Positions 15,461 through 50,442 of a DNA stretch of 64,000 nt are shown one piece after another; within the stretch, counting starts at the first letter, position 1; the number at the start of each line of letters is the position of its first letter. The stretch is taken from the NCBI GenBank assembly GCA_965644495.1, contig CBFFSA010000008.1:496001-560000 (forward strand), given 5' to 3'. The notes beneath the pieces were generated by a model that searched no databases, was not told the origin of the DNA, and saw only the letters and a list, made by a program, of their open reading frames with translations. Source of the stretch: Perkinsela sp. CCAP 1560/9 (Eukaryota; Protista; Euglenozoa: Kinetoplastea). The position numbers and the translations under genes are program-made.

Positions 15461-16630
15461 CTATTGACTAGAGCTCACTAATGCACGAAATCTCGAGAAA
15501 AGCAATCTCGACGTAGAAGTATTCGGGCACGATCTGTCGACAGATGCTCGCATTGCCGGACAGTATGTAATCGAGCTCAAATCCCCTAGCATTTGGCTGA
15601 TTGTAGATTCAGTCTTCGGCAAACTTGGCCGTTTTGTTCGTGCACAATATTTCCGCAGATAATTGGCAGGATAAACGTAATCCATGAACTTGTCAAGGGT
15701 CGAAGCGTATTTGTCGATGGAATCATTCTCAAAAAGCGCGTCCGAGGGTTGCAACTTGACCGTTGTCCAATTTTCATCGTGAAAACGAGAAAACTTAGAT
15801 AGCAGGGCTTCTTTCATGATGTGTTTGGCAGCAAGAGGAATATTTAACCGAGGATCTGTGTGTATCTTCTCAAAATTACATGCCTCGATAAGACCAGAGA
15901 GTGCTTTCCCATAACCTTCTGAGATGGAGTCAGGAATCCAAGTGTCGTCTCCGAGAAATAGAAACTTTCCAGACTCAAAAGCTTTTTTATACGTGCCGCT
16001 GAGGCCTCGTTCATAGGATGGGAGTGGGGCAGCCAAAAGGCACTTGTAGCTTAGGGTGAGATGCAGATGATCCTCACTCGTCATCACATGCTGTTCGTCG
16101 GGGTGACCCTTGAATTCTCCGAGCCCGATAGTAATGTGTACACAATGTCAAACGTAGGACATACATTTTTCCCCCATAGGAACTCTCTCCATGCTCAAAA
16201 TTGGGGATGATCTCGCCACAGACACAGGATATTTTTCCATCGTATCAAGATTATAAATTTAGATGTCGCCCAAAACGAACATACTGCTTAGTCTGGACCA
16301 CTTTGCACTAGGACTCTCGCATAAAGTATGTTCGAAGTAGGAAGCCAGCGCGCTCGTCACACAAGCGGTGGGGTACTTTGCGTAAAGAGTGTAAGAAAGC
16401 CGAAGGGTGCTAGGGCTCATAGGTGAATTGGTCCTCGTATCTTCGTTCTTCCGAGAGTCGCTCAAACAGATACCGTTTTCGTCAGATTTCCGAAAAGTAT
16501 AATCTTCTACAACTTGAGGAGGTTCTATTTCTACATTGGCATGTGCTGATAAAATTCCGAGCATGTGATTTATCACACAGATGTCGACAGATTTATTTAT
16601 ATTACTGTTCCCCCACCACTTATTTGTCAC
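15461..16630 (-). pseudogene. Probable single disrupted gene of unknown family (ORFs 16259-16630 and 15461-16087)
   Basis: Frame stays open after the TAA at 16259-16261 (IYNLDTMEKYPV...) and overlaps the open frame leading into 16087, consistent with one stop plus one frameshift. Confidence 0.45.
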
Positions 16631-16740
16631 CCCTTTTTCGAAAAAAGGACAAATAAGTAAGGGGGGTAGAGCTATGACAATTACGTGGGGGGATTACAGT
16701 TCGTGCATACTTCAAAAATATCTGCTTACGAATGTTCTTA

Positions 16741-16813
16741 GGTCAGCGTTAGTACCATCAGTAAGATAGCAGTGCCAGGGAAGACCACGAGGAAGTCCCG
16801 ACCTTACTTCCCC
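16741..16813 (-). ncRNA. HDV-like self-cleaving ribozyme, copy A (73 nt)
   Basis: GGGGAAG-UAA-GGUCGGG-ACU-UCCUCGU-GGU-CUUCCCU-GG-CAC-UGCUAUC-UUACU-GAUGGUA-CUAA-CGCUGACC gives P1 (7 bp, G-U first pair), P2, P3, L3, P1.1, P4 and a J4/2 catalytic C in HDV order. Confidence 0.88.
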
Positions 16814-16910
16814 ATTTTGGGTTGCGCCCAGAAGCAAGCCCACTTTAATTTTGCAATAGTCAAAACTTTGCGATAGAGAAAAAAGGTTATGGTATTAGTA
16901 TCATACATGA

Positions 16911-17021
16911 AGCGAGTACAGTACTCGTGTACTCACCCGAGTTGTATAGCGAGTAATTACTCGGAGTACCGTACTCGCCGTACTCGCTTCCAGCAGGTAT
17001 TTACTCGCTATACAAGTGAGT
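16911..17021. repeat. Foldback/palindromic repeat rich in GAGTA/TACTC
   Basis: TTGTATAGCGAGTAA ... TTACTCGCTATACAA inverted arms around GTACTCG repeats. Confidence 0.6.
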
Positions 17022-17201
17022 TTGGAACAAGTGACGTTATGTTACGAATTTTCTGGTCGAGCAATTGCTGGTCGAGGAGGATGTGAGATGTGATAAAGGA
17101 TGGAATGCGGGGTGTAAATGCGTTTGCAGTACAATCTTGTCGTCGCAATCTTGTTACTAATTACAGTAAAGTATTGTTGACTAATTTGACTCAGACGAGA
17201 T

Positions 17202-17314
17202 GTAGTGCCTCCTTATTCATTTCCGAAGTAGTGTAACAAGAAACTAAATAGAAATTAAAGCATACGGTAAAAAAATACGTAGTGCCTTCTTATTCATTTC
17301 CGAAACGGTGTAAC
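17202..17314. repeat. Two-copy ~36-bp direct repeat, period 77
   Basis: GTAGTGCCTYCTTATTCATTTCCGAAnnnGTGTAAC at 17202 and 17279. Confidence 0.8.
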
Positions 17315-17316
17315 TA

Positions 17317-17450
17317 AACCGGGGGACGGAATAATATTAAGTTGTTGAAACTTAATAATAACTTGACAACTTAATAGCCTGTCAAACTTAATAATAACTT
17401 GTCAACGTTTTGAAACTTAATATTAACTCGTCGGCGGGTTATTATTAGGT
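17317..17450 (-). mobile_element. Solo right end of the pogo-like element found at 53307-55559
   Basis: TA-AACCGGGGGACGGAATAATATTAAGTTGTTGAAAC... matches the reverse complement of 55441-55559. Confidence 0.88.
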
Positions 17451-17691
17451 TTTTGATGACTTTTAAGGTGACGTTTATCATTGGAGGGTGTGTAGGCCGT
17501 AGCTGGAGGTTGCTAGCAGTCGCTTGCAGTAACTGGTAATCAATGAGAGCCTCTGGTTGCCACTGGAGGTCAGAATGACTAGAAAACGACTAGAAGTCGC
17601 ACTGGAAAGTCGCTTCTTTCACTCTACCGTCCCTAGCATCGCATTAGCAAAATTACTTATGCATTAACGGTTAAGCATTTTGCTTCATAGC

Positions 17692-17763
17692 ACTACATAT
17701 GAATGGCCTACATATGAATGGACTACTTATGAATGGCCCCCGCAGTCCCCTGACTTAAATCCA
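17692..17763 (+). mobile_element. Tc1 transposase remnant with a short tandem triplication
   Basis: CTACWTATGAATGG x3 running into codons for EWPPQSPDLNP. Confidence 0.6.
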
Positions 17764-50369: not shown

Positions 50370-50442
50370 GGGGTAACATGGTTGGGACCTCTTCGTGGTC
50401 TTCCCCGGCACTGCTATCTTTCAGATGGTACTGACGCCGACC
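50370..50442 (+). ncRNA. HDV-like ribozyme, copy B (degenerate P1)
   Basis: GGGGUAA-CAU-GGUUGGG-ACC-UCUUCGU-GGU-CUUCCCC-GG-CAC-UGCUAUC-UUUCA-GAUGGUA-CUGA-CGCCGACC; 61/73 identical to copy A with no indels. Confidence 0.8.

Follow-up and report, generated by a model that had tools for sequence, protein, structure and literature searches.

The window (the whole 64,000-nucleotide stretch of DNA analysed) holds a gene array in which 22 of the 24 ORFs of at least 220 aa lie on the minus strand, as does every Pfam-positive ORF at 12–24 kb. The kinetoplastid-like character of the genome is read from this one-strand array; a protein search with the PITH-domain gene matched only the genome's own protein and, at 32%, a fungal one. 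The 73-nt motif considered here, an HDV-like ribozyme by its fold, is on the same strand, so the sense orientation read in an earlier note on this DNA holds. The motif belongs to a fragment of a non-autonomous DNA transposon (family A), which sits in the spacer between an eIF3f-like gene and the next gene, with the ribozyme 1.5 kb behind the eIF3f-like gene. No reverse transcriptase gene adjoins the motif, as had been stated before. The DNA below 16597 is single-copy host sequence. The next two ORFs downstream (16259–16630 and 15461–16087) were considered as parts of the element and rejected; they have no Pfam match, are single-copy in the genome, and were assigned to the host. A repeat of an unrelated family (17315–17763) abuts the broken left side of the fragment. 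It is 87% identical to copies on contigs C11 and C14, and a 138-bp sub-repeat of it occurs in more places. The features around the motif are collected in Table 1.

Table 1. Features of the family-A fragment and its ribozyme motif (positions in the window; a slash marks the element boundary)
Feature	Position	Strand	Remarks
TA dinucleotide flanking the right end	16603–16604	−	presumed target site, as for TA-inserting transposons; same ...CAG/TA junction in other copies
Terminal palindrome, 62 nt	16605–16666	−	subterminal inverted copy pairs with the right terminal inverted repeat (...GACAAATAAGTGGTGGGGGAACAG)
Spacer, ribozyme to terminal palindrome	16667–16740	−	family-specific, unconserved between families
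HDV-like ribozyme motif, 73 nt	16741–16813	−	predicted cut 5' of G16813; C62 = 16752; private U20 = 16794; 100.4 bits (own covariance model R1)
Family-A non-autonomous DNA transposon body upstream of the ribozyme	16814–17248	−	approximately positions 593–1027 of the 1258-bp full element
Small predicted leader hairpin just upstream of the cut site	16818–16842	−	z −1.9, weak significance
Breakpoint zone, partial tandem duplication of ~40–47 nt	17249–17316	−	17277–17316 repeats element positions 632–671

Fold of the motif and a change private to the window copy

Read directly from the sequence, nt G16813 to C16741 of the minus strand show the pairing given in the earlier note, in the full nested double pseudoknot. 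P1 is formed by nt 1–7 and 31–37, with G1-U37 as the first pair; P2 by nt 11–16 and 68–73, extended by G17-C66 across the bulged G67; P3 by nt 18–20 and 28–30 (A-U, C-G, U-G); and P4 by nt 43–49 and 55–61, giving 7 bp with a 5-nt loop. L3 is the 7-nt UCCUCGU; P1.1 arises from its CC and the GG that follows P1 (C22-G39 and C23-G38). J4/2 reads C62-U63-A64-A65, with the catalytic-type C first and then the adenosines expected for an A-minor contact with P3. All 25 core pairs are standard (23/23 in P1–P4), U21, G26, C62, and A65 are all present, and P1 crosses P2, as in HDV-like ribozymes. For HDV, an invariant U and G in L3 (U23/G28, antigenomic numbering) have been described, together with a catalytic C in junction IV/II, an extruded U next to it, and two junction adenosines docking on stem III (PMC3386971). 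The window motif agrees with each of these features.

The site also stands out when letters other than the invariant ones are disregarded. A descriptor composed only of the helix geometry and the invariant U, G, and C was run on both strands of the 64-kb window, and its single match was this site. The same descriptor gave 1 match across 60 mononucleotide shuffles, so a chance fit to the five helices and the invariant bases is expected about 0.02 times per window. The earlier note had proposed a search with HDV-like covariance models; Rfam 15 returned no HDV-family match, either for the whole window at the gathering threshold or for the local 601 bases at E ≤ 10. This negative result carries little weight, because pseudoknots are beyond what such models score and because sequence similarity between this family and the curated families is low. 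The nested minimum free energy fold of the window copy is no better than that of shuffles (z −0.7), as expected for a pseudoknot, for which nested folding is uninformative; it prefers a non-native helix. As judged from its letters, the window site carries every sequence hallmark of an HDV-type self-cutting RNA, from which we infer cleavage.

The description of the motif as intact-looking is accurate for all core pairs and signature bases, but it has to be qualified for P3. The window copy differs from the family consensus by one change, C20 to U at 16794. U20 is absent from every other aligned copy, and nearly all contigs of the other copies read the consensus base at this position. The change converts a C-G pair of P3 to U-G, which weakens the helix, and it completes a competing 8-bp helix between nt 1–8 and 18–25. 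Only in the window copy does the nested minimum-energy fold drop the native P1 for this 8-bp helix. On the basis of these predicted folds, cleavage of the window copy is expected to be slower or partial, and not necessarily abolished.

A repeated module in the genome

The first search of the 21-Mb genome was made with 161 nt around the site and gave 40 scored matches, many of which spanned only query positions 45–121, which is the ribozyme itself. With a covariance model built from 24 copies (R1), the genome search at E < 0.01 gave 126 matches, about 80 of them above 50 bits. The alignment comprised 73 copies, each together with 1.5 kb of flank, and the ~50 weaker matches were judged by their coordinates only. 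When 18 carrier families are compared, identity is ~80% over the 73-nt block and 28–30% over the 60 nt on each side, which is the background level; the step in conservation falls at G1 and C73. Within families, the diversity of the block does not exceed that of the flanking 100 nt and is up to ~7-fold lower.

The signature bases are retained across these copies. In A1 (24 copies), C62 is present in at least 90% and A65 is invariant, and in the 65 full-length copies C62 is kept in 60 and A65 in 63. By all criteria, 18 of the 73 copies are perfect, the window copy included. The first P1 pair is G-U in 49 of 62 distinct copies and G-C in 6 of 62. In L3, U21 and G26 are near-invariant and the last base (position 27) varies between C and U, and the same pattern of variability in loop III has been reported for HDV (PMC3386971).

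Pairing is kept in 91.7% of the cells of the alignment (62 distinct copies), compared with 32–55% when the partners are slid by 1–3 columns. Among the genome copies, double changes keep the pairs in P1, P1.1, and P4. In P4, the pair 46:58 appears as C-G, U-A, or U-G; in P1.1, C22-G39 is replaced by U-A in four copies (L057–59 and L076); and in the divergent copy L066, G4-C34 of P1 is A-U and C45-G59 of P4 is U-A. The covariation was scored from 6 double-change pairs in one genome and among close relatives, with a shuffle control that is not independent of relatedness; it is real but thin.

Several further observations concern the arrangement of the copies. A second copy of the module in the window, at 50370–50442 on the plus strand (84 bits, carrier family D7), has two mismatches in P1 (GGGGUAA vs CUUCCCC) and is probably decayed, to judge from its letters. 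On one side of it the minus-strand gene array ends, at 46.6 kb; on the other, at 53.4 kb, is a plus-strand ORF. At least 12 weak R1 matches (39 bits) with a spacing of 1692 bp form a tandem array at G000:C2:619581–638252, and the content of the array unit may be HDV-like or merely similar. At two other loci (L063 and L069), two ribozyme-like units stand in tandem (1501–1573 and 1610–1685), 36 nt apart; each is preceded by the same short leader (...tttgacaccctcaaca), and the second unit is decayed (36 bits). A rough count of orientation relative to neighbouring long ORFs gave ~33 copies on the same strand and 18 on the opposite strand, and this count is confounded by ORFs borne by the elements and by duplicated loci.

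The search was also extended to metagenome contigs, where the exact 25-nt core pattern had no match. A looser core pattern picked out 15 GC-rich metagenome contigs, which were rejected as chance matches; they have no fold, score 22 bits at best, and are broken in P1 and P4.

The transposons that carry the module

Within every multi-copy family, conservation extends to both sides of the ribozyme, upstream of G1 as well as downstream, so the ribozyme is internal to the repeated element and is not its start. A right end of the form ...CAG/TA is found 109–306 nt downstream on the same strand in ~38 of the 73 copies, compared with 3–8 at control positions. The right ends read ...GGGGGGCACAG/TA in family A, ...GGGGGGGACAG/TA in D0 and L066, ...GGGGGGGGTGACGG/TA in family B, and ...GGGAGAG/TA in D1; in D2, both ends are seen (left TA/CAGTGC, right ...GCACTG/TA). 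Full family-A elements (L003, L004, L006) are ~1258 bp long and bounded by TA/CTGTGCCCCCCACTTATTTGTCAC and its inverse. Their terminal repeats are TA/CTGTGCCCCCC...GGGGGGCACAG/TA, of which the window copy keeps the right repeat and TA only. A reading of the motif as a free-standing ribozyme of the gene array is not supported, given the position of the module inside TA-flanked inverted-repeat DNA transposons and its 126 model matches.

The carriers include elements with transposase sequences. In family B, a CENP-B_N ORF, a DDE_1 ORF, the ribozyme, and the right end follow one another in this order on one strand. Same-strand DDE_1 or CENP-B_N ORFs lie upstream of the ribozyme at four loci (L012, L014, L015, and L066), and at L066 the DDE_1 ORF is 600 nt upstream of it. 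The ORFs of the ribozyme-bearing family B and of L066 are fragmentary and match DDE_1 at E 2e-14 and CENP-B_N at E 1e-6, and the right ends of both resemble that of family A. Judged by coordinates only, two further, intact-looking pogo loci (C1:12108 and C1:2473334) have DDE_1 ORFs of 691 and 707 aa, with a ribozyme ~290 nt past the DDE_1 match. All of the transposase-bearing copies have perfect ribozymes. By these domains and ends, the carriers are probably pogo-like elements (CENP-B_N, DDE_1) and their short non-autonomous derivatives. No autonomous partner with family-A repeats was identified in the genome. The mobile-element load of the 21 Mb is heavy, with >1000 reverse transcriptase, 392 DDE_3, and 68 DDE_1 first-look candidates.

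The family-A element around the window copy is broken. It is 91.8% identical over 668 nt to the L006 element, and the window retains only element positions ~593–1260 (17248–16605); the left half and the left inverted repeat are absent, so the element is immobile. The right end is intact, with the element ending at 16605, 136 nt past the ribozyme. The sequencing runs found to contain the region consist of DNA-like contigs, and no RNA run was among them; the four that were compared mark repeat boundaries, with a back-join between 17274 and 17230. Near family-A position 600, a 45–47-nt segment is tandemly repeated in variable number, three times in L005 (G000:C4:755131–755270), and the window has it in partial duplicate (17249–17316). 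The leader hairpin just upstream of the cut site was considered as a defining part of the module and rejected, since it occurs in only about half of the carrier families.

Palindromic right ends occur in several carrier families (window 16605–16666, L066 1745–1809, and the D0 copies). In such palindromes, the subterminal inverted copy faces the terminal repeat, and a strong hairpin is predicted directly behind the ribozyme, either in RNA or in single-stranded DNA. With a relaxed threshold in Rfam, the hairpin of the terminal palindrome in the window gave a weak miRNA-like match.

HDV-like ribozymes are known at the 5' ends of retroelements, including those of trypanosomatids (PMC4035085, PMC3185411), so the motif might serve to process the 5' end of a retroposon or SINE, in the style of R2 or L1Tc/ingi, lodged inside other repeats. 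Two copies (L023 1506–1578 and L051 1501–1573; G000:C20:148667 and 150267) are in keeping with this idea in that they head a small poly(A)-tailed retrocopy. In both of these neighbouring copies, G1 is the first base of the module and comes directly after a poly(A) run; past the module stand 8 nt and then a purine-rich 3' tail with poly(A), both from a local neighbouring retroposon. With this layout, they resemble chimeras that arose when a cleaved RNA was retrocopied. Their start would be explained because a reverse transcriptase could copy an RNA with G1 as its 5' end, and they fit cutting in the cell, as one or two events only. As heads of a retroposon, however, they are a two-member local oddity, a ribozyme with a borrowed retroposon tail. 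Elsewhere, G1 is no boundary, as the upstream sequence is conserved in 8/8 family-A copies and in every other multi-copy family; the stretch from the ribozyme to the ...CAG/TA end lacks a poly(A) or A-rich tail; and the elements end in inverted repeats with TA. For the window copy, a retroposon 5' end was rejected by this flank analysis, which also agrees with the view that its context is unrelated to the 5' ends of L1Tc/ingi. We consider a retroposon origin of this kind highly improbable for the module as a whole.

Transposases often bind the subterminal zone of transposons. The block lies in this zone, and it might be conserved at the DNA level as a transposase-binding or enhancer site, with the HDV-like fold as a coincidence. 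A binding site would predict a second inverted copy near the left end, and none is present there. The rarity of a chance fit to the five helices and invariant bases and the pair-preserving double changes in P1, P1.1, and P4 also speak against a coincidental fold, and this explanation is very unlikely.

More weight is due to the view that the module is a passenger that a DNA transposon took up a single time (the donor being perhaps a retroelement or a host gene) and that recombination then spread among families, with no role for the transposon, whether or not it still cuts. For short non-autonomous elements, which are mobilized as DNA, an RNA function is not required, and the abundant retroelements of the genome are possible donors. 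The large short-element families D1 and D2 have fixed single mismatches in P1.1 or P4, so ribozyme activity is unnecessary for spread at the DNA level, since these families multiplied despite the mismatches. A detected ribozyme lies near only ~6–7 of 59 DDE_1 matches, which is a minority of the DDE_1 loci. A passenger would not be expected to sit at the same place and in the same direction with respect to the right end in at least six families that look unrelated, or to remain 80% identical where the surroundings have diverged to background. The block diversity within families, at or below that of the flanks, and the perfect folds in the transposase-bearing copies also count against a mere passenger, and we regard this explanation as unlikely.

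Proposed role and comparison with known ribozymes

Weighing these observations together, we consider it likely that the motif is an HDV-like module of pogo-like DNA transposons, that the window copy is an immobile relic of one of them, and that it is read through and cut by means of C62. The module is situated ~110–300 nt inside the right end of the transposon, pointing outward, and would form a 3' untranslated part of the transposase genes; deletion derivatives would inherit it from the pogo-like transposase genes. Read-through transcription of the gene array would supply the RNA, which would fold into the double pseudoknot. C62 would then catalyse attack by the 2'-OH group of the nucleotide preceding G16813, yielding an upstream piece with a 2',3'-cyclic phosphate end and a downstream piece with a 5'-OH at G1. 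In the parent elements, such a cut would leave the transposase transcript free of the right inverted repeat and of the flanking host RNA. Candidate benefits may include 3' processing independent of context, self-limitation, and the avoidance of fold-back RNA between the inverted repeats. In the window relic, any cut would be a by-product, possibly slowed by C20U.

A stronger version of this proposal is that the module is a selected, standard 3'-UTR part of the pogo-like lineage in a kinetoplastid-type protist, providing a 3' cut without trans-splicing-coupled polyadenylation or detaching the right repeat to keep read-through RNA from folding back. We hold this version only tentatively, as a possibility that the present evidence leaves somewhat doubtful. 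If it is true, this would be the first class of self-cleaving ribozyme that serves cut-and-paste transposons, and about a hundred potential RNA cut sites would be scattered through the polycistronic units. Each sense-oriented copy is a potential uncoupled cut in the host pre-mRNA of the gene array. The family is compact (73 nt) and readily testable in vitro.

The self-cleaving ribozymes known in eukaryotic mobile DNA are those of elements that copy themselves via RNA, whose RNA intermediate is produced by the cut. The ribozyme described here occupies a constant location in transposons whose movement is at the DNA level, without such an obvious use. A fixed ribozyme without an obvious use in transposition points to a need of the transposase gene at the RNA level, which might be 3' end formation, dosage control, or the avoidance of fold-back. 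In the full-text literature search, no report was found of HDV-like or any other self-cleaving ribozymes in DNA transposons or MITEs of eukaryotes, which agrees with the earlier suggestion of a ribozyme family not yet described.

The core letters of the window motif resemble those of the HDV antigenomic ribozyme. With HDV and HDV-like ribozymes, the motif shares P1, P1.1, P2, P3, and P4, the 7-nt L3, the C followed by U-A-A in J4/2, and a cut 5' of P1. It differs from HDV in its minimal P4, its total length of 73 nt, the other sequences of P1 and P2, the lack of a match in Rfam, and its home, which is a DNA transposon and not a circular RNA agent.

Among mobile elements of kinetoplastids, L1TcRz/Pr77 is formed by the first 77 nt of non-LTR retroposons (L1Tc/ingi, NARTc, SIDER) and is also a promoter, and down-regulation of mRNAs has been connected with SIDER copies located between genes or in 3' UTRs (PMC3185411, PMC4035085). 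Common to Pr77 and the present module are HDV-like ribozymes spread by mobile elements, a polycistronic genome of the kinetoplastid type, and copies in intergenic or 3'-UTR positions. The present module is internal, near the right end of a DNA transposon and downstream of a DDE ORF, and it is set apart from Pr77 by this location. R2 also has an HDV-like fold at its 5' end (PMC3774820). The HDV-like fold that frees the element RNA from the host co-transcript is shared with R2, but the carriers described here transpose as DNA, and the cut cannot serve a transposition intermediate.

Self-cleaving ribozymes also exist in the 3' UTRs of mRNAs, for example, the hammerheads of rodent Clec2. These resemble the present module in lying downstream of an ORF, where the cut detaches the coding part from the following 3' end; they differ in the class of ribozyme and in that Clec2 is a host gene, whereas the gene concerned here is that of a transposase. 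Compared with all of these systems, the fold itself is already known, and what appears to be new is its home in cut-and-paste DNA transposons.
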